Notes under the pieces: generated by a model
Databases searched by the model: none
Told to the model about the DNA's origin: nothing
The model's input: the letters and a program-made list of their open reading frames with translations, nothing else
Assembly: GCF_902459465.1 (NCBI RefSeq)
Contig: NC_047074.1
Span: 7,626,001 to 7,690,000 of the forward strand
Origin: Asterias rubens
Taxonomy: Eukaryota
Direction: 5' to 3'
DNA length: 64,000 bases
Program-made: the position numbers and the translations under genes
Part shown: piece after piece, positions 1-59,716 of the stretch
Numbering within the stretch: the stretch's first letter is position 1
Layout: every line of letters begins with the position of its first letter

Positions 1-150
1 GAGTGATGAAATTAGTTTTCTTTATTTCTAAACAAATAAACATTTCAAGAGTTGTTTTCTACTGTCATTATCATTAGATCGTGTAAGTTAAATATAAATC
101 TGTGATCTTCACGATTTTTTTCCTAACCAATTCTTTAATGCTCCTTTGAA
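1..150. mobile_element. Right end of a non-autonomous TTAA-type (Kolobok-like) element, same family as 3359-3648 and the termini of 20241-25993
   Basis: Shares ATTTCAAG.G.TGTTTTCTACT.TCATTATCATTAGA.CGTGTAAGT...AAATCTGTGATCTT with 25880-25950 and 3543-3605. Confidence 0.7.
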
Positions 151-229
151 AATAATGAAACAACATCAACAATTTGTCAACACATTGCAGTATTGAAGTA
201 AGGTTTAGTATCACATCTTTTGAATTCAG

Positions 230-3200
230 ACAATTACCAATGCACCGAAGTGGTCCCGAGACGTCTCCAAGCTTCTCAACCCCGAGCATGAACACGATTG
301 GAGGTACCTGGCTATACGTCTCGGCTTCACTGGAGAAGATGTCCGTAACTGGGCACTGTCTCCAGACCCTACGATGTCCCTACTGGCGGAATGGTACACT
401 GTACATAAGAGTAGTGAAGCTACGTATGCTATACTGACTGCATTACAGGATATGGGTAGAGAAGATGCGTCCGCCATAGTGGAGGAATCATTGCAAGCTG
501 CAGGTATGATGACGTCACGGTGATGACGTAGTTTGGTATCTCCGTTTAATACTGGTTACTCTTTGATATTCTCACAGCGAACGTGTTCTTCCATACATCA
601 ACATTTTTACAACGGTAAGAATCTTAAAGGCACTAGAAACTTCTACTCAAAATGAGTCCTAGTAATAGCATAAAAACTTACTTAGAAACGAGCAATGGAG
701 AGTTGTTGATAGTATACAACCTTGTGGGAAACGGCTCCCTCTGAAGTAACGTTTTTTGGGGGAAAGAGGTCATTCTTACTCAAAGTCTTTTGATACTTTT
801 CGGCATCTAAAAAGCACATCAAGTTGTGCAACATGGGTGTTTTTTCTGTCATTGTTCTCTTGCAACTTCGATGACCAACTGAGTCCAAATTTAACAGATT
901 TGTTATGTTATTCATATAATTATGGGATACACCAAGTGAGAATACTGGTCTTACCAAAATGTGTACAGTGTCTTTAAATGGATACCTTTCCAAATAAATA
1001 ACAAGAGACACACGACAAGCTGTTTACCCCAGAAAACATGCATTATATCTGTATTCTGTTTTGATCCGTTGTACTAATGAAGTGATTGATTAATGTTCAT
1101 TAAAATTACCGAGACTTAATCATGATATAAAAACGCTTGACACAACAAAACAATAATACATGTATATGTTAATTTTCCGTGCGTGACAGATGCTCTGGTA
1201 CCCAAGGCTGCCCCCGAAATGTCAGAGAAACCCCCTCGGGTCTTCATCAGCTACCAATGGGATCACCAAGCAGAGGTGAAAGTCATCAAGGAACATCTTG
1301 AGAAAGCTGGCTTTGGTTGCTGGCTGGATATCGGTCAGATGGGAGGTGGTGATAGCCTCTTTGCTAAGATCAACGACGGCATGAGAGCTGCAAAGGTAGT
1401 CCTCTGTATGTGCACCGAGAAATACTCCAAATCAGAAAACTGTAATAAAGAGGTGAGCGCACATGATTCTATATGTCACCATCTTGGTGATGTTCCCTGT
1501 TTCATGAATGCTAACATTCATTGTGCACACATGGCACCAGACTATTATTTCATCCAGCCTCAGTTTGGTTACAACTAGTAGGAATGGAGTAAAATCAGAG
1601 ATGGTCTTACCGTGATAAAGGGCTATACTGTCGACAGTCATAAATTTCACTATACAATACCATACTGACCACAGTACGCCGCACCTTTTCTTTGGATTAG
1701 TCTATCTGTGCATATTCGCCATGCTAGTTCTTTACAATGTTTTAAGCTGCTTATATGTAATCGTATATTTTACTTATTGTATATTTTATTGTTCTTCGAA
1801 TGTGCTGTGAGGCTTTTTGCATTAGGCGCTTTACAAATGTCCTAACCATTACTACATTGTAGGCCTATGTTGAAGTATTCCTCACAAACTTGAAATCCCA
1901 TATACCATTCAATCCATGCCAACATTGAAGCCCTTTCCTCTACAACAGGTGAATCTTGCCAACCTGTTGAACAAGCCAATCATTCCTGTACTCATTGAGA
2001 AGACAGCTTGGCCACCAGCTGGCTCTATGAGTATGTTGTTTGCTCAGCTTCTCTACATCCAGCTTTATAACGACAAGGAATACATCAGAGGAGACAAGTT
2101 TTGGGGAGACGCAAAGTTTGCTGAGTTACTTGGACAGATTAGTTACCATGCTGCTCCGGATGAAGACATGATTTCTGACGGTAAGACTTCATTAACTTCT
2201 TCATAGTTCACAAAGTAAACATAAAATAAAATAGTGGCTTCTTATAGTGCGAACAACCGTCACTCAGTGACGCTCAAGGAGCCTCAACATTCATCTTTAT
2301 CCTGCAAGGTATGTGGGACCGCGTTTGAATCACGAGACCTACCGGGGCGAACCCCTTCTCTTTTCGATAGAGTACACTGCATTACACTGCATTACACACC
2401 GCACGGGCCCAAGGCATTACGTCCCATCCGAACGACGTAGCAATGGTTAAGTGTCTTGCTTAGGGACATAGGTGTTAAGACTGGGACTGGTTCACCCATA
2501 CTCTGCTGATCAGAAACACAGAGTTTGAATCTGGCTCTGTATACCGCTAGGCCGTGGCCCGCCATGTTAATGTTAAACAGTTGGCAAACAAACCAACCAT
2601 GAAGTCATAAAGCTGTATTCATAAATACCCAAGACAGTTTCTCTAATCCTATTAGGGGAGAGCGCGTCACGTGGGGGTGTTTAAACGGTTGATAATGACC
2701 AGTGTTTATAACCGGCTGGTTTCCGCGTGTCAGGCGCGCAAGATTATCACGCGGAACTCAATTCATAGCTATTAGAAACAGTGCGTAATCTACTTCTAAG
2801 CGCGCGCGTAGTCCAATTCTAGGCGCGCGCGCGTACTCACAACACGGCAATAGACTCTTTACAAAGTTTTTGAAAAAAATATTTAAAACCTCAAATTTTC
2901 AACTGTCGAAGTGTCTGTAATTGTATTTTTGTAACGTTTTTTTAACGAAAGGGCATTTATGAATGGGAATCAAAGAGTAGTGACTCGTTCTTATATCATG
3001 AAGGGTCGTTGCCGTCATCGGCTCGGGCCTTTATCACACGGCAATTTGACCCTGCCGGCTTTAAACGGCCGTGTAAGAACTCTTAACTACCCTTTTATTC
3101 CCTTAACAAGGTACGGAGCCAGTCGTTGAAAGTGGACATACCTGTTCTTATTGCTGTTCCTTCTTTTCTTTCCTTAATAACAGAGTATCGCAACTGGGTG

Positions 3201-5135
3201 CCCCAGATTGATGATCTTCCTCAAGTTGTCAAGAAAGCAGATACTCAACCATCAACCAACTCATCCACTCATAACCCAACATCACAGGATCAGGTAAAAC
3301 TAAACTTTATAAATCACAGTAGATTAACGGTCATCACTACTTATTGTGTAAAACTTAAAGGAACGTTACAATTTTTGTTGCTAACAAATTTATTGGCAGT
3401 GTAAGTACTTTATGTAATCCACTATATACATAAACTGACAAACCTGTAGAAATTTGAGATCGATCGGCCACTTGGGTCACGAGAAAATAGTGAAAACCGA
3501 TACACATTCTGCATGACATCGGTAAAAAAAATATATATATATATTTCAAGGGATGTTTTCTACTATTATCATCATTAGACCATGAAGCTTCATGAAAATC
3601 TGCGGTCTAAGGCGAGTTTTTATCTTGCCAATCATGTAATGTGTCTTTTTAAAACAACGTTTGTACAAAGCTAGACAAATTAAAGCCTCACAACTTTTTC
3701 CTCTGATTCCTTTCCCCTTGACAGGTGGATAAGTTGATCCCGCAGGTATTTATCTCCTACCAATGGGACAAACAAACTGAGATCAAGAGACTTTACTCTC
3801 GATTGACATCACTGGGATTCAGCTGCTGGCTTGATATCCTCCAGATGGGTGGAGGAGATCCTCTCTACTCGAAGATCGATAAAGGAATCAGGAATGCCAA
3901 GGTATCAACAAGTTCTTATAATAGCACATTTCACAACTACCGTCTCAATTCGCTTTACATTAGTGCCCTGGCCATTGGGTCAATATCCATTTCGTTGATC
4001 TTTCTCAGCTCCCTTGGGAGTACACAACCTTGCCAACCGTGGCTATTTAACAGGCTTGTTAATACACAATATCGACCTCTACCCTCGCAGGTACCCATTT
4101 ATACCCCGGGTGGAGAGATGCAATAGTTAAAACCATTTGCTCAAATCATGACCGCTATTCGAACCCACACTCCGCTGACCTAACCACCATGTCTGGAATT
4201 TAATCCTCTTTACAACTCAGCCATGACACCCTACTTATTAAAAACAAACATTACATTCCTACTTGAGTAGGAAGGTAATGCCTCATAACAGTTGTGTAAA
4301 ATATATGAAGTTTTTATGAAATATTTACTATTTTCCTCAACAGGTTGTGATTTCTAGTGTGACCCCAAAGTACGCCCTCTCTGCAAACTGTCGTCGAGAG
4401 GTCAGCCTTTCCGATGCTCTCAGGAAACCCGTTATCCCGATCCTCATGGAGCAGATGACATGGCCTCCAGAAGGTCCAATGAGCATGCCCTTTGCGCAGC
4501 TTCTCTACATCGACTTCACCAAAGAGTCAACCCAGAAGGAATTCACCGATAACAAATTTGATGAATTGCTGGAGAAGCTAAAAGAACACGCAACAGTTGA
4601 GGAACTCCTCATTCAGCGAAAATTATCAGCAGAGGAGGGCGAAAAAGAGGAAACACAAGCAGAACAACCTGCAACTAAGAAGCCCTGTCAGACCATGGAA
4701 CGGACGGAAGACAAATCGTTGACATCTCTCCCGGATGAAAATCACCTGGAAGAAGCAGATCAACCTGAGCGGCCGAGATTAGCAAGTGACCCTCAGCATG
4801 AGGTAGTTGAACCTGAGAGACCCAAACTGGCTCTTGTAAAGTTCAAAAAATCTTCGTCCGTCATTCAGCAACCAGAACGGGGTTGTCATGAGGAACTACC
4901 CGAGGAACAACCTGTAACTAAGAAGCCAAGTCAGACCATGGAACAGACGGAAGGTAACCCATTGACACCTTTCCCGGATAAAATTCACCATGAAGAAATA
5001 CTAAAGTCTATAGATAAACCTGAGCGGCCAGGATTGGCCAATGGCACTCAGCATGCTAAGGTAGTTCAAGCAGAGAGACCCAAATCTGCTCCTGAAAAGC
5101 CAAAGAAATCTTCGTCTGTTTGTGCAATTATCTAA
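230..5135 (+). CDS. 5'-partial multi-exon gene: Death domain - TIR_2 - TIR_2 - acidic duplicated tail - C-terminal CaaX. Exons 230-503, 1190-1452, 1949-2180, 3184-3293, 3725-3901, 4344-5135
   Basis: All six exons have AG/GT boundaries and compatible phases (0-1-0-1-0-0). Exon 1 translates to a death-domain-like helix pattern ([22 protein letters not shown]...LLAEW...[16 protein letters not shown]). Two TIR_2 domains begin RVFISYQWD and QVFISYQWD with WLDI.QMGGGD and CNKEV/CRREV motifs. The protein ends [10 protein letters not shown]. Upstream exons lie outside the window. Confidence 0.9.
628..973. mobile_element. Kolobok-like MITE, family K1 (termini AGGCACTGGACAC-like)
   Basis: TTAA at 624-627 and 974-977; imperfect TIR AGGCACTAGAAAC / GTGTACAGTGTCT; the body recurs at 26796, 36345, 37993, 38648, 55893, 58082 and 63865. 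Confidence 0.8.
2225..2565 (-). mobile_element. tRNA-derived SINE
   Basis: Minus strand starts GGCGGGCCACGGCCTAGCGG (A-box-like), has a degenerate B box, then GTCCCTAAGCAAGACACTTAACC and ends GCACTATAAGAAGCCACTATTTTATTTT; layout typical of aquatic invertebrate SINE2 families. Confidence 0.65.
2610..2900. repeat. Dispersed unclassified repeat segments
   Basis: 2612-2705 matches the reverse complement of 62715-62812; 2760-2905 matches the reverse complement of 32857-33010. Confidence 0.6.
2935..3110. repeat. Dispersed repeat, inverted copy at about 32105-32320
   Basis: GGGCATTTATGAAT.GGAAT...GTAGTGACTC and ATCGGCTCGGGCCTTTATC...CCCTTTTATTCCCTTA are shared in reverse complement. Confidence 0.7.
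3359..3648. mobile_element. Short Kolobok-like MITE; internally deleted relative of the 5.75-kb element 20241-25993
   Basis: Starts TTAA|AGGAACGTTAC; the left half matches 20255-20410 and the right half matches 25880-25950. Confidence 0.7.
3945..4200 (-). mobile_element. SINE with a Deu/Nin-type conserved central domain
   Basis: CAGGTACCCATTTATACCCCGGGTGGAGAG (4088-4117) is the reverse complement of the conserved CTCTCCACCC.GG.GTATAAATGGGTACC core; TTCGAACCC (reverse B box) follows at about 4159. Confidence 0.6.
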
Positions 5136-5450
5136 ACAATAAGACAAAGTAGAATTGAACAACTTTTAAATGCGCTTGTGTGACTATTGCCTTTATTTGA
5201 ACGGTCAAAGTTGGAACAAATACTTGTTTTGAAGATATTTATTTTTGGTACTGCACGAAGAAATGTAGGAAAGAGGCGCCTTTGCGGAAATTTGTTTCAG
5301 AAATAACATTGTTTGTCTGCACGAGGCGTGGTTTCAATGGAAATGCGGTTCCATTTACAGGGCTGTGTCATTAAGCACGGGCAGCCATTTTGTTTTTCCT
5401 ACTTTCGCATCAACGTATTTTGACGTCATATTATTAATACTTCTTACCTG

Positions 5451-5616
5451 GGCCCAATTTCATAGAGCTGCTACGCACCAAATTTGCTTAGCATTGAATT
5501 TCTTCCTTGATAAAAACAGGATTACCAACAAGTTTGTTGCATATTGCTTTTTACTGGTATTCAACTGTTGTTTGGTAAGCAAATTTTTGTGGTTAGCATC
5601 TCTATGACATTGGGCC
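5451..5616. mobile_element. MITE with CWG target duplication (PIF/Harbinger-related, NuwaI-like)
   Basis: CTG|GGCCCAATTTCATAGAGCTGCT...AGCATCTCTATGACATTGGGCC|CTG; related copies at 23598-23860 and 38836-39064 are flanked by CAG. Confidence 0.75.
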
Positions 5617-6460: not shown

Positions 6461-6687
6461 ATGCAGGTGATGGTGGAGCATCAGGAAAGTTTAACGTGTG
6501 TTAAGAAATAAAGTACTTATAAGAAGAGATCAAGCGTTTAATTAGAGGTGACGTCATTCCATACTACAGTGTGACATCATAACCTCATGGAAAGAAGTGT
6601 AACTGTTTATTAAGAAGATGACGGGGAAACGGTTCTTCACGCGTTTCGATTTCAAAAGAGGTAGGCAAGTCAGAATAAAGTGTTCAT

Positions 6688-7558
6688 TTAATAAAGGGAT
6701 TTAATATTCAGATAAGAACCGAGCAACCAAAGACAATAATCATGATTAGAGTATATTTCCTCATCAGAAACATGTGAATCCAGATAGTAGCAGCGGACAC
6801 TCTCTTGAAAATATTCCCTCACGACTTGGTAGCGAGTGGCATTAATAGTGAGCTCACAAAAATGGGGCGTGGAACCAGACGAACTCCGCTTGATGATGAA
6901 TGAAAGACAGTCCTGGCGCTCCATACATCGTCGTCTGCAGACGGCTTCTGTGTCAGTTGGATATATCTGTCCAGGGTGTGGCCGAAGAGACAGCGAGACA
7001 CAAAGTGACCAGTAGACTAATCTATGGTCATGCAGTACACGTTCATAGCAGACTGGCTACGGCTGACTTGGCGAGGACGCTCACAGACGATGAACATAGG
7101 TCGACCTTTGCTCATATCACCCCAAAAGCCAAGTATGTCTGGATTCTTATCATCGTAAACTTGGGTTATCCTGAAGCCATAATCCTGATTTGCCTGCCAT
7201 TTGTCATCATCTGGTTGGTCGGGCTCCCACTTCCGATAATCAGTCAGATATTTACCATTCTCGATGCAGTTCCATTCACCTTCAACTTCAGCATCATTAC
7301 AATTGATCCAAACACCTCCGTGGTGCTGAAACGCATTCAATAGGAACTCATTTTCGCCATCTGAGCTTGGGACCATTAAAGATGCATTGTAACGATCACA
7401 CTGCATTACGGCAGTGGGCTGTGTGCCATTCATGGATCCATCCAGACCCAAGAATCAGCAAAAGGCACCCATCCATAAGGGCACCCTCTCCCTGCAAAGA
7501 CACCCTTGATCACCATGCCAATGACAGATAGAGAAACAACTGAGGTTGAATACATCAT
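6688..7558 (-). pseudogene. C-type lectin + PAN/apple pseudogene (QPD-type)
   Basis: ATG at 7558 gives MMYSTSVVSLSVIGMVIKGVFAGRGCPYGW; a 7-nt deletion relative to the 34.7-kb paralog shifts the frame; CTL motifs GVWINC..WEPDQPD..WGD..IVCE; TAG at 7017-7019; a 2-nt insertion in the PAN region. Confidence 0.85.
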
Positions 7559-13377: not shown

Positions 13378-27330
<13,953 letters not shown>

Positions 27331-52175: not shown

Positions 52176-54167
52176 TTAGTATCTGCTTTTATTAACATTT
52201 TCTACACATTTTCTACACGAAATCGGTTTCGTAATTGGAACTCGCACGCAGTGCAAGATCTTGACCGAGTGAAAACTAGCTATGATTAGTTCACCGGCAG
52301 GAGTAAACGTCATGGATATAGCAAACAAGCCACGAGCTACACGGCCGATGTGCTCACCCGATGCATCGTAATGATGAATCTCACAGGCTCCCAATGTACC
52401 GTAATGAAGAGACACATATATGTCTCCAGCATCGTCGCAGCACACACCGACAGGTTTTACAGGTTTGCCGCCAATAGTGGTCCTGATATTGAACACCTCG
52501 TTTCCCATGAAATCCACACAAACCAGTTTCATCTTGTGGTAGTTTGTAAATATTAGTCGCTCTTTGCTGCTTACAGATATCCTGCATGGATTGCTTATAT
52601 CGCCATGATGTGTAGTATTAATGGTAGATCCGTCCATATTATGGAAAGATATAATCTTTCTTATACAGTCAGCCACTGCAATTCGATCTTTCTTATCCAC
52701 TGCGATTCCACTGAGTAGACTCTCTGACTGCCCATCGAATTCATTCTGCGAGGGTCTGAACTGACGAATGTATCTCAGTTCTCTGTCATAAACCTTTACG
52801 TCCTGTCCATCAGTAACCAGAAGCAGGTCATCAGAGGTCACGGCAACACCGTAAGGATGTTTTAGTTTACCATCCTCTGTTCCGCATTGAACGCCTGTGG
52901 ATTTGGGACAACCCTTTGCTGTAAATGTGCTTAATAGCTTTCTCTCTGTATCAGTAACAACCAAGTATCCAGTGTTAAAACAAGCAACGTCTGCTGCCAA
53001 CTTGAACTCCCCCTCACCTTCCCCTTTTCTACCAAACTCTGTCTTCACCTCCCACTTCTCTTCCTCTAGTATTTCACCGATATCCGCATCAGTGACGACA
53101 CCATGACCTTTGAACATGATGAATGACTTGCTACGCTGCACTGATCGAAACTGGAGCTCTTTGAGGAAAGTCAAGTTGTGCATAACCTTTGCCTTGAGGT
53201 CCAGCAGCTCAAAGTCATCAGCATATTGCATCAAGTTGTTGACTGAAGCTACGATTTGCTCTCCACGGCTCATCTTGTTGCAATTGCTGCTCCTGATGCT
53301 GCCAAATTTCTCACCTCTTTCTTGACCGATTTGAGTGACTCTTTTTTGTAGGAGGCGAGATGCATTTCTTATTTTAGCGATTTCCACTTTCTCCTTAGCC
53401 GCAATATCTCGAAGAGCCCGGTCGACCATGAGCTGTAATCTACGCTGCGAGTGTTTAACGGAGTCATCCACTTTTTGAAATTGCTTGCGACATTCATCGA
53501 AATTCATCAATTCCGCTGCGACAGCTTCACGAAAAACTCGAATGAAATCTTTGATTTCAAAGATTTTGTGTTTTGACGCTCGGTGATCATACACAACACA
53601 AACAGGGCACGCATGTACATCACAATTTTCGCAGTAAAAACGCAACTCCTGGTCAGTGTGTTTCCAGCACTTTGGAGATTTAGATTTGTCCTTGTCTTTG
53701 GGTCGCCCATTTGACGAGCCGACAGCATCATTGATCCGATGATGCCTGTGTCTTTTCGCGTGGTGTTCCAGACATGCAGTGCAAAAACTCATGTCACAGT
53801 CAACACACCATGAAACGGCTTTCAGACCTTCGTCGCATCCTTGGCAAGTTGAGCTACGAGGGTTGGTGTCTTCTTTTAGACCTTCAAGATTTATGACGTC
53901 GTCAATAAGTGAGCTCAAGAAAAAGCAGTTAAGAAGAGCCGACACTCCCTTTTCTGGGATTAAAGTGTTTTCTCTACAGACGGGACATATAATAATATTC
54001 GTTTTCGGATCCTGTTTGTCTGTAAGATCATGAAGGCATTTTAGGCAGAAGCTGTGCTGACAGTCCAGGATTTTTGGATCCGTGAACCGAGTCAGACAGA
54101 TTGGGCATTCGATGTGTATATGTCTAATCTTGCAAGTGGTCTCAGTGGGTGGTGCAGATTCGGCCAT
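52176..54167 (-). CDS. TRIM-NHL E3 ligase paralog, 663 aa, single coding exon
   Basis: Same architecture and long identical stretches with 39594-41534; start MAESAPP after the homologous acceptor; 22-aa C-terminal extension. Confidence 0.92.
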   Translation of the reverse strand: MAESAPPTETTCKIRHIHIECPICLTRFTDPKILDCQHSFCLKCLHDLTDKQDPKTNIIICPVCRENTLIPEKGVSALLNCFFLSSLIDDVINLEGLKEDTNPRSSTCQGCDEGLKAVSWCVDCDMSFCTACLEHHAKRHRHHRINDAVGSSNGRPKDKDKSKSPKCWKHTDQELRFYCENCDVHACPVCVVYDHRASKHKIFEIKDFIRVFREAVAAELMNFDECRKQFQKVDDSVKHSQRRLQLMVDRALRDIAAKEKVEIAKIRNASRLLQKRVTQIGQERGEKFGSIRSSNCNKMSRGEQIVASVNNLMQYADDFELLDLKAKVMHNLTFLKELQFRSVQRSKSFIMFKGHGVVTDADIGEILEEEKWEVKTEFGRKGEGEGEFKLAADVACFNTGYLVVTDTERKLLSTFTAKGCPKSTGVQCGTEDGKLKHPYGVAVTSDDLLLVTDGQDVKVYDRELRYIRQFRPSQNEFDGQSESLLSGIAVDKKDRIAVADCIRKIISFHNMDGSTINTTHHGDISNPCRISVSSKERLIFTNYHKMKLVCVDFMGNEVFNIRTTIGGKPVKPVGVCCDDAGDIYVSLHYGTLGACEIHHYDASGEHIGRVARGLFAISMTFTPAGELIIASFHSVKILHCVRVPITKPISCRKCVENVNKSRY

Positions 54168-55290
54168 TTTGATGAGAATGGGCAATCCTGTAACCTGAAA
54201 TAAAACGAATTTCATTTCGGTTAGTTTAAAGAATCAATGGCTGCGTTCGATTATGACGTAGAAGCTATTCTAACAGAGGGTTGTGTCGACCTTGGTCAAC
54301 CCGGAAAGGCTAATTAAACGCACCCATTGAGTGGAGCAATCAGATGAGTGGATACTTTTAGAAAGTGCAGAACCGATTAATGGGATAGGCGCGACAACTT
54401 GCGGTTAGAATCTAGTTTTGGTCCAACAAATGCATTGATGAACACATGAAGTGCCAGACGGTTCTGCATATTTGGCAAAACTGTATTTTGACTCAGAATG
54501 GTGTCGACCAACGACGTGACCAAAGCAAACTGCATGGTCTCGCTTTGTAGCAACTCTTTCGATCAAAAACAATACATGGTCTTACCACCTAAAATACCGC
54601 TAAAAAGGACTGGTGTCATTTCATGCCAAAATGAACATACTTATAGGTTCAAAACTATTCTCAGTGCTTTTCCCCTACAGTTGTTTTACCAAAACGTTTA
54701 ACTAAGGACAATCACACAAACAATTTTGTTCTGTAAACCATGTGCATTTTAGCTTTTGCCTGTGATACAAGTTCTTTATAATTGCCCGATTTCCAAATCG
54801 ATGGCTTTTGAAACCACTATGTTAACTCATTTTAATGTGGGTTCTGTATTTTGCATTTCTGCATTTTTAGCTGATTTTTACCGTGTTTATGATTTTTTCA
54901 AAACTGTAAACCATGTGCGATTCAGACTTTGCCTGCAATGCAAGATCGAGTCAGCATAAACTTGTCAGATCGAGTTTCATTAAAGGATTTGGTACTTTTC
55001 ATAAACAAAGTACTGATTTGTGTGAGCCATCGTGCTCATGTTTTAGAGTGTCCGATCTGTGTCGGTTATTGGACAGCATGAACTCCAAATGAAAGTTAAG
55101 TCCTACCTGAAGCTGTTGTTGCTTTGACTTCACTCTCTGCGTAGAGTTGATCCCTTTTGCTGAACTTCGGGAAGAGGCTAATGGCCGGCAGAAATTGGAT
55201 CCTGAAAGACAAACCCAAATAATATAGTGAACTTAGGCGAATGAATGTACGGTACATGTATCGGCTATACTAACACCCACGCGCAAAGGT

Positions 55291-58475: not shown

Positions 58476-58969
58476 TTAAGCCGGTTATGGCCTGTAAAAA
58501 CCAATGACTTTTATCCAGATGAATTTTACTACAGCAATTTATTGGTTGTTGTTTGTTCATAATACGAGCACTTGGTATTGTGTGATATATTATGGATCTC
58601 TTACTCAAGGACTCTAAGTACGTCTCTGCATGACAAGATGACTATACCAACAATCCTGTGCAAAAGCATTTAATTAAATTTGCTCGTAAGGTCTACATTA
58701 TGCTACCTTTTATTGTTTTCTTTCTTCTTATAAACGTATCGACAAACAAGAAATTCTATAGACAAAATCAGAATAGGATCACCATAGTAGTATTGACGCA
58801 GATACTTGAAAACATCAGACGTTTACTATTAATAACCAATTGTTACCTGATGGTACCAAAGTAGGCTAAGCTTTTTTCATGCAAGTAACAATTTTCTAGC
58901 GTAGCTGGTCAGACTTTGTAATTTTATCTCCACCAGAGAGTCTTGTACATCTTTCTTGTATTCATTTCA

Positions 58970-59716
58970 ATGTCAACCATGAAGACTTTAGTTTTACTAT
59001 TCGCAGTTGCCCTTTATTTTGTGGTGTCGAGCTGCAATGAAGGTTTGATCTGCCCCACTGAGTGGGTGTTATATGGCGAGTCATGCTACAAGTCAGTAAT
59101 GGAGAAAATGGCTTTTGATACCGCAGTCATCACCTGTGCTGTTATGAGTGGCCACGTTGCAGTGCCTACGTCACTCTCAGAGCACCAGTTTATCTGGGAC
59201 ATGGTCAGTGAAGTCGCAGAAGGTCCTGTCTGGGTTGGCTGCACTGATAGGGAAGAAGAAGGCAAGTGGGTGCAGGTTGATGAGGTAGAGTGCAGTTTCT
59301 TCAACTGGGGTCCAGGAGAACCCAATAATGCTGGAGGTGAAAATTGTGTGTTAATGAATCCTCCTTTTGATGGTAGCTGGAATGATGGTCCATGTACCTG
59401 GCCGACCTACGTGGTCTGTCAGCGCCCTGCCGTCGCACCAACCATCCCGCCAGTCGGCCTGCACTGCCTGCAAGCAGACACCAACGGCCGCTTCGCATCC
59501 CACTGCCTGACCGGTCATGTCATCAAGGAGTTACCGATCAAAGGCGTCGTCGGGTGTGGTTCAGCGTGCCGGGATGAGCCTCGATGCCGCTCCTTCAATG
59601 TACGACTTAGACGCAGAAGCAACGAGAAGATCTGCCAGCTCAACAACGTCACTCGTGAGGAAGCTGATAACGAGGATATTGACATGGACAATGCTTGTTA
59701 CTATTTCAACATCTGA
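58970..59716 (+). CDS. Intact secreted C-type lectin + PAN/apple protein (EPN/WND, mannose-type motif), 248 aa
   Basis: Signal peptide MSTMKTLVLLFAVALYFVVSSC; CPTEW...SCY, VWVGC, WGPGEPNN...ENC, WNDGPC...VVCQ; PAN CLTGH...CGSAC...CRSFN...CQLNN...CYYF. A likely 5'-UTR acceptor ends at 58935. Confidence 0.92.
   Translation: MSTMKTLVLLFAVALYFVVSSCNEGLICPTEWVLYGESCYKSVMEKMAFDTAVITCAVMSGHVAVPTSLSEHQFIWDMVSEVAEGPVWVGCTDREEEGKWVQVDEVECSFFNWGPGEPNNAGGENCVLMNPPFDGSWNDGPCTWPTYVVCQRPAVAPTIPPVGLHCLQADTNGRFASHCLTGHVIKELPIKGVVGCGSACRDEPRCRSFNVRLRRRSNEKICQLNNVTREEADNEDIDMDNACYYFNI

Follow-up and report, generated by a model that had tools for sequence, protein, structure and literature searches.

A conserved C-terminal CaaX motif suggests prenyl tethering of a starfish Death-TIR-TIR protein and its invertebrate family

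The stretch of DNA analyzed here, called the window, is a 64-kb segment of an Asterias rubens chromosome (G000:C14:7626001-7690000), and the gene of interest lies on its + strand. The gene has 17 exons, the last six of which are in the window and 11 upstream of it, and it encodes a protein of ~1230 amino acids (aa) comprising an ARM-like solenoid (~540 aa), a coiled coil, a Death domain, two TIR domains and a disordered tail of ~185 aa. It is likely that this tail ends in a functional CaaX motif, whose cysteine at position -4 would be isoprenylated, most likely with a geranylgeranyl group, leaving the Death-TIR-TIR module tethered to membranes on a flexible leash. We infer the attachment of lipid to Cys -4 from sequence. 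A preliminary description of the window had proposed a prenylated Death-TIR-TIR protein at this position, and the domains that it named are present, but the list was incomplete, as the ~540-aa solenoid and the coiled coil are encoded upstream of the window.

The coding sequence ends in Cys-Ala-Ile-Ile-stop, with the cysteine codon TGT at 5121-5123 followed by GCA ATT ATC TAA (Ala, 5124-5126; Ile, 5127-5129; Ile, 5130-5132; stop, 5133-5135). The end of the coding sequence had been placed at 5094-5135, which is exact, with 5094-5096 as the first codon of that segment. As summarized in PMC11304957, the consensus for geranylgeranyltransferase-I (GGTase-I) is Caa[L/F/I/M/V], and the screens of that study put the emphasis on a2 being branched and aliphatic and on X being hydrophobic. 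With isoleucine at both a2 and X, CAII lies within this rule. The preliminary description had also read the motif and the basic, serine-rich stretch before it as a signal of the Ras/Rho type, which agrees with the fit of CAII to the GGTase-I consensus and with the predicted disorder of the tail, where 74% of the residues are polar or disorder-promoting. The asteroids Patiria and Acanthaster end in CAIL, and it follows that Asterias made a Leu-to-Ile change at X. The enzyme check in A. rubens covered PF00432 and ICMT: prenyltransferase beta-type repeats (PF00432) occur at three candidate loci for the GGTase-I beta subunit (C11, C20 and C1), and an ICMT gene (PF04140) is present on C19.

The motif is widely conserved. 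An exhaustive HMMER search with the last exon as the query gave 409 matches, of which the best 150 representatives were examined, and 115 of these 150 carry Cxxx at the C-terminus. A word-seeded search with the Death-TIR-TIR-tail part of the Asterias amurensis protein P0151 provided named full-length proteins, with matches in all five echinoderm classes, hemichordates, three Branchiostoma species, many molluscs, the annelid Owenia and the nemertean Tubulanus; a Cxxx end is found in 87 of the 102 newly found full-length homologues. Across 248 distinct homologue tails from six phyla, cysteine occupies position -4 in 198. Cysteine has a frequency of 1.7% in these proteins as a whole and 0.34% elsewhere in the tails, and because it is so rare in the tails yet so regular at this one position, the terminal CaaX is not due to chance. 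The neighboring positions follow the same pattern among the 198 cysteine-bearing tails, with Ile, Leu or Val at -2 in 190 and Leu, Ile, Val or Met at -1 in 183 (the residues counted at -1 being L, 146; I, 24; V, 7; M, 6; S, 10; and Q, 5). By comparison, the spacer between the second TIR domain (TIR2) and the motif ranges from 64 to 377 aa and is unalignable across the family. Identity between pairs is 0.55 for the last nine residues and 0.62 for Death-TIR-TIR, and falls to 0.17 in the spacer where it can be aligned, or 0.09-0.13 when tails are anchored at their ends. The expectation that the CaaX box would be kept in orthologues and paralogues despite diverged tails is therefore borne out. Short database entries (150-500 aa) that share the tail could be taken for a separate TIR-only family; this was rejected, as they are mostly last-exon frames on genomic contigs (P0001, for example, is the last exon of the A. 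rubens paralogue described below).

An end-anchored logo of the tails shows that conservation reaches upstream of the CaaX box, with Lys at -9 and -8, Ser at -7, Lys or Ser at -6, Ser, Thr or Ala at -5, Cys at -4, a variable -3, Ile, Leu or Val at -2, and Leu or Ile at -1, giving a tail consensus of K-K-S-[K/S]-[S/T]-C-x-[I/L/V]-[L/I]. Ser -7, three residues before the cysteine (5112-5114 in the window), is found in 194 of the 198 tails, and when 40 full-length proteins are aligned, no column after TIR2 is invariant other than those of Ser -7 and Cys -4. Since Ser -7 is nearly invariant, the conserved signal is longer than the CaaX box. Prenyltransferases are not known to require Ser -7 or Lys -8 and -9; Ser -7 may instead act as a switch through phosphorylation, or make contact with a chaperone. 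The extended conservation is also what would be expected if the K-K-S-x-x-C-x-I-L end were a docking motif or the site of a modification other than prenylation, such as a PDZ-like ligand, an S-palmitoylation site or a redox cysteine, and 25 tails do carry a second cysteine nearby. We regard this explanation as unlikely, as the conserved Cys -4, Ile/Leu/Val at -2 and Leu/Ile/Val/Met at -1 are exactly the a2 and X determinants of GGTase-I (PMC11304957), a variable a1 is typical of CaaX boxes, and a basic, serine-rich stretch before the box is usual in prenylated small GTPases (PMC7958859). A second cysteine would add palmitate to a prenyl anchor and not replace it.

The history of the family is consistent with an old origin of the prenyl-type tail. 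In a 101-row tree of Death-TIR-TIR segments each phylum forms one clade, and therefore the family has been inherited vertically. Proteins that lack the CaaX are few, require eight changes of state, and are all nested inside CaaX-bearing clades; part of this set consists of short models that end just after TIR2. The simplest reading of the sequences is that the ancestor last shared by deuterostomes and spiralians would already have carried the motif. Among the proteins lacking the motif are a Haliotis clade (P0245, P0248 and P0252) ending in ...MPDVSD, and proteins of pulmonate snails (P0211, P0223, P0228, P0237 and P0254), the group as a whole ending either in MPDVSD or in basic, Lys/Ser-rich sequence with no cysteine. 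These clades could represent real losses, alternative last exons or model errors. In three further proteins (P0051, P0058 and P0117) the CaaX is followed by Trp or Tyr and extra residues, probably because a gene caller using another genetic code read through the stop.

In the gene model of the window, an open frame at 4347..5135 (+) lies within the real last exon, 4344-5135, and the sole GT..AG pair for the last intron that keeps the frame yields exons 3722-3901 and 4344-5135. The spliced translation of the window (615 aa) agrees at every junction with the model that NCBI gives for P0156, the A. amurensis orthologue. The 11 upstream exons match residues 1-620 of P0151 and P0156 by tblastn, such that all 17 exon matches are present, with stops only where the alignments overrun into introns. 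On the + strand there is no AATAAA near the stop codon, the first one after it being at 6507.

Transcript evidence comes from Logan contigs of four public runs, placed on positions 1-5600 of the window. Several contigs skip introns at canonical borders, from which it follows that the runs hold RNA-derived sequence. Record 6 of run X12 joins 230-500, 1187-1450, 1947-2179, 3183-3290 and 3722-3888 with zero mismatches, and record 1 of X1 and record 10 of X3 show the first three exon joins. At the 3′ end, contigs at 4383-4537, 4508-5129 and 5107-5526 give unbroken cover of 4383-5526, through the CaaX and stop codon and into the 3′ untranslated region (3′UTR). Among the contig joints listed, none removes the CaaX motif. 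The possibility raised in the preliminary description, that transcripts end elsewhere, finds no support in contigs that run through both motif and stop. One contig, X1 record 5 (779 nt), matches 4508-4635 and 5003-5526 with 124 other letters replacing 4636-5002, and possibly represents an allele or another copy whose tail is shorter, consisting of one unit. Stretches of the introns and 3′ flank (562-1122, 1310-1683, 2245-2992, 3367-3740, 3928-4114 and 5424-5600) have contig depths in the thousands in all runs; these are interspersed repeats, and they produce many false joints in read tables.

A. rubens has a second copy of the gene. The paralogue, P0155 (LOC117295983; 1156 aa), lies at about 4795391-4802700 (-) on C11 (G000:C11; loci L002/L009), has the same 17-exon layout with a single tail unit, and is 83% and 67% identical to the window copy over two parts of the last exon. 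In the tree, the duplication that gave rise to these two copies is specific to the Asterias lineage. The window protein, P0155 and both A. amurensis proteins (P0151 and P0156) have an identical SSSVCAII end. The tail of the window copy is itself a tandem duplication, with units at 4611-4862 and 4863-5120 that are 72% identical, and the CAII-stop follows the second unit only. The orthologue P0156 has this tail duplication too, and the C11 paralogue lacks it. The tether grew by about 80 aa as a result, and the anchor signal was kept whole.

Such a history allows for the explanation that the CaaX works in the family at large, with the window copy being a young, decaying duplicate that carries a leftover motif. 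The origin of the copy within the Asterias lineage and the duplication in its tail would fit, as would the identity of only about 73-80% to the A. amurensis orthologue in some N-terminal exons, as measured from tblastn pieces. We consider decay very improbable nonetheless, given 17 of 17 exon matches with stops confined to intron overruns and the mismatch-free spliced contig X12 record 6. Between the window copy and the A. amurensis orthologue, identity is ~96% over Death-TIR-TIR, ~85% over the tail and 100% over the last 29 residues, and the tail duplication is found in both species with the terminal CAII preserved. A pseudogene is likewise unsupported, considering the intact exons, clean spliced contigs and orthologue identity. 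Finally, that the terminal Cxxx is a chance occurrence or an artefact of a wrong 3′ end has in its favor only the base rate, a few per cent of proteins ending in Cxxx, and is rejected as scarcely credible against conservation across six phyla, transcript cover through the stop and an independent gene model that agrees.

Several observations weigh against a functional prenyl anchor on the window protein. The basic patch is modest, with four lysines and one arginine against two glutamates in the last 20 residues. Isoleucine, which stands at X in only 24 of the 198 tails, is a weaker GGTase-I determinant than leucine. The last 12 codons are nucleotide-identical between the paralogues, and for this reason there is no signal of selection from synonymous changes within the genus. 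With respect to the transcripts, the splice from 3901 to 4344 is absent from the contigs shown, and the run types were guessed, so that the RNA origin of the contigs is taken from their skipping of introns.

If the CaaX is functional, GGTase-I in the cytosol (or farnesyltransferase as a fallback) would add an isoprenoid to Cys -4, after which Rce1 would cleave off -AII and ICMT would methylate the new C-terminus. The lipid, along with the adjacent basic patch (KPKK), would then keep the protein on the cytosolic face of the membrane, and the ~185-aa flexible tether would give the Death-TIR-TIR module reach to receptor TIR domains or partners. More speculatively, phosphorylation of Ser -7 may control prenylation or release from the membrane, as in Rap1B.

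The structure of the protein was approached through an AlphaFold2 model of the paralogue P0155, built with a 40-sequence alignment in place of the window protein. The model contains a confident helical solenoid at residues 1-540, with a predicted local distance difference test score (pLDDT) of around 90, followed by a 59-residue helix (544-602), the Death domain (628-714), the first TIR domain (TIR1, 729-879), a disordered linker and TIR2 (922-1053). The counterpart of the linker exon, residues 885-916, has a pLDDT below 50, and the tail (1061-1156) is coil with a pLDDT of around 30 and no secondary structure. A Foldseek search with this model gave full-length human SARM1 as the top match (7anw_A, E 3.9e-6), along with ARM/HEAT solenoids. 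In the window, Pfam detects a Death domain within 224-520 and TIR_2 halves in four more open stretches, and exons and homologues alike show one Death domain plus two TIR_2 matches. In sequence comparisons p75NTR has the closest Death domain, and the TIR domains lie nearest to bacterial and SARM1 TIRs, the SARM1 matches being weak. A glutamate at the catalytic position of both TIR domains (E799 and E992 of P0155; encoded within 1187-2179 and 3722-4589 of the window) is invariant in 40 homologues, and in an alignment with the bacterial TIR 3h16 the ...NKEV... motif falls opposite ...QKEL... of that protein. The invariant glutamate hints that the domains may cleave nicotinamide adenine dinucleotide (NAD) rather than serve purely as a scaffold.

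The window gene is a member of ecTIR-DC family 6, which is defined by an ARM-like arm, a Death domain in the middle and a pair of TIR domains (PMC6836662), and the protein has both the long ARM-repeat-like N-terminal region and the central Death domain followed by two TIRs. The classification is credited to Gerdol et al. 2017 in the description given in PMC6836662. Aplysia LOC101850562 (P0013), listed as “MyD88-like with Armadillo-type fold” (PMC9334734), and the Strongylocentrotus purpuratus UniProt entry “MyD88-like protein L1” (P0161) are direct matches of our searches. The family is predicted to be cytosolic (PMC6836662), for the reason that its members have no transmembrane segment or signal peptide, and reports describe high expression in the gills of mussels and, in the gills of clams, co-expression with Toll-like receptors (PMC5549309, PMC6836662). 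The window gene shares the architecture of family 6, with its distribution limited to invertebrates, and adds to it the conserved K-K-S-x-x-CaaL tail. Judging from the sequences, membrane tethering is probable for a family that has been described as cytosolic. A broader proposal sees in family 6 an ancient switch of bilaterians, SARM1-like and either NAD-cleaving or signaling, that is anchored by geranylgeranyl and has Ser -7 phosphorylation as a control on prenylation or release; we offer this only tentatively, and as a whole it is rather doubtful. If it were true, invertebrates would place a Death-TIR-TIR executioner or adaptor under their expanded arrays of Toll-like receptors by means of a tail in the style of Ras/Rap, a way of regulating TIR proteins for which no counterpart is on record.

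In overall design the protein resembles SARM1 and Caenorhabditis elegans TIR-1, as all have an ARM-type solenoid, an oligomerization module and a TIR of the NAD-cleaving type with a catalytic glutamate. Unlike SARM1 and TIR-1, the window protein has no SAM domain found by Pfam, and the 59-residue helix or coiled coil and the Death domain stand in that place; it has two TIRs instead of one, a C-terminal CaaX instead of an N-terminal targeting sequence, and a putative NADase activity. SARM1 also associates with a membrane, the outer one of mitochondria, by way of its N-terminus. MyD88 shares the combination of Death and TIR domains. However, the ARM arm, the coiled coil, the second TIR, the TIR_2, bacterial and SARM1-like character of the TIRs, and the p75NTR-like Death domain rule out a MyD88 orthologue; TIRs of the MyD88 type fit the TLR/MyD88 model, whereas those of the window match Pfam TIR_2.

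A TIR adaptor positioned on a membrane in advance has precedents in TRAM, TIRAP/Mal and Drosophila MyD88. TRAM owes its membrane sorting to N-myristoylation, and TIRAP and fly MyD88 owe theirs to the binding of phosphoinositides, whereas the anchor of the window protein would be a C-terminal isoprenoid. The preliminary description had called a lipid anchor unusual for TIR proteins; this holds for the prenyl type and the C-terminal position, but not for lipidation itself, given that TRAM is N-myristoylated. The tail resembles a hypervariable region of the Rap1B type (polybasic plus CQLL), which is also disordered, basic and serine-containing and stands directly before a CaaL-type box. In Rap1B, phosphorylation of the hypervariable stretch by protein kinase A blocks SmgGDS-607 binding and prenylation (PMC7958859). 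The window protein differs from Rap1B in its size (~1230 aa), in having no GTPase, and in the position of its serine at -7 and not adjoining the cysteine. Several vertebrate innate-immune proteins, namely OAS1 p46 (CTIL), GBP1/2/5 and ZAP-L, are sensors or effectors that would be soluble but for a C-terminal CaaX, which sends them to endomembranes. Their domains are unrelated to those of the window protein, and none is a TIR or Death domain.

In the searchable literature, which does not include Gerdol et al. 2017, we found neither a prenylated TIR protein nor a CaaX on family 6, and the Aplysia paper mentions prenylation only in reference to OAS1 (PMC9334734). Family 6 and the CaaX pathway are each known, and their combination was not found in that literature. 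TIR signaling depends on where TIR domains concentrate. In vertebrates this is the task of sorting adaptors that are myristoylated or bind lipids; for an entire family of invertebrate TIR proteins, with members in starfish, amphioxus, molluscs and worms, a Ras-type prenyl tail seems to serve instead. Such a tail would provide the family with its first concrete and cheaply testable cell-biological hypothesis, with Ser -7 as a second conserved residue and possible regulatory site, and would bring the TIR/Death-domain machinery, alongside vertebrate antiviral factors, into the list of prenylated innate-immune proteins. The features of the gene are collected in Table 1.

Table 1. Exons and tail features of the Death-TIR-TIR gene (window positions unless stated otherwise)
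Feature	Position	Strand	Evidence
11 earlier exons	G000:C14 about 7617468-7625709, upstream of window	+	tblastn mapping
Death-domain exon	230..500	+	Pfam Death 4.4e-11; spliced contigs X12 rec 6, X1 rec 1 and X3 rec 10 join 500 to 1187
TIR1, first half	1187..1450	+	Pfam TIR_2 3.4e-18; borders from spliced contigs
TIR1, second half	1947..2179	+	Spliced contigs; aligns to P0156 residues 798-876
Inter-TIR linker exon, predicted disordered	3183..3290	+	X12 rec 6 joins 2179-3183 and 3290-3722
TIR2, first half	3722..3901	+	Pfam TIR_2 3.3e-11; GT donor after 3901; matches orthologue junction ...RNAKVVISS...
Last exon, part 1 (TIR2, second half)	4344..4589	+	Pfam TIR_2; acceptor AG 4342-4343
Tail repeat unit 1, 84 aa; ends ...KFKKSSSV, next to which stands unit 2 and not a Cys	4611..4862	+	72% nucleotide identity to unit 2
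Tail repeat unit 2, 86 aa; ends KPKKSSSV; holds basic patch and Ser -7 (5112-5114)	4863..5120	+	
CaaX box Cys-Ala-Ile-Ile and TAA stop	5121..5135	+	Identical in chromosome-11 paralogue and both A. amurensis proteins
3′UTR, at least the contig-covered part	5136..5526	+	X12 rec 9 (5107-5526), X1 rec 5

The neighborhood of the gene in the window looks rich in genes of the immune type. Two intronless open frames, at 39594-41588 (-) and 52176-54215 (-), encode proteins of the TRIM-NHL type (664 and 679 aa), which carry RING, B-box and NHL repeats. C-type lectin domain exons are found at 7017-7451 (-) and 58943-59716 (+), the second of which also has a PAN domain. A run of 153 N, either a gap or masked sequence, occupies 16683-16835.

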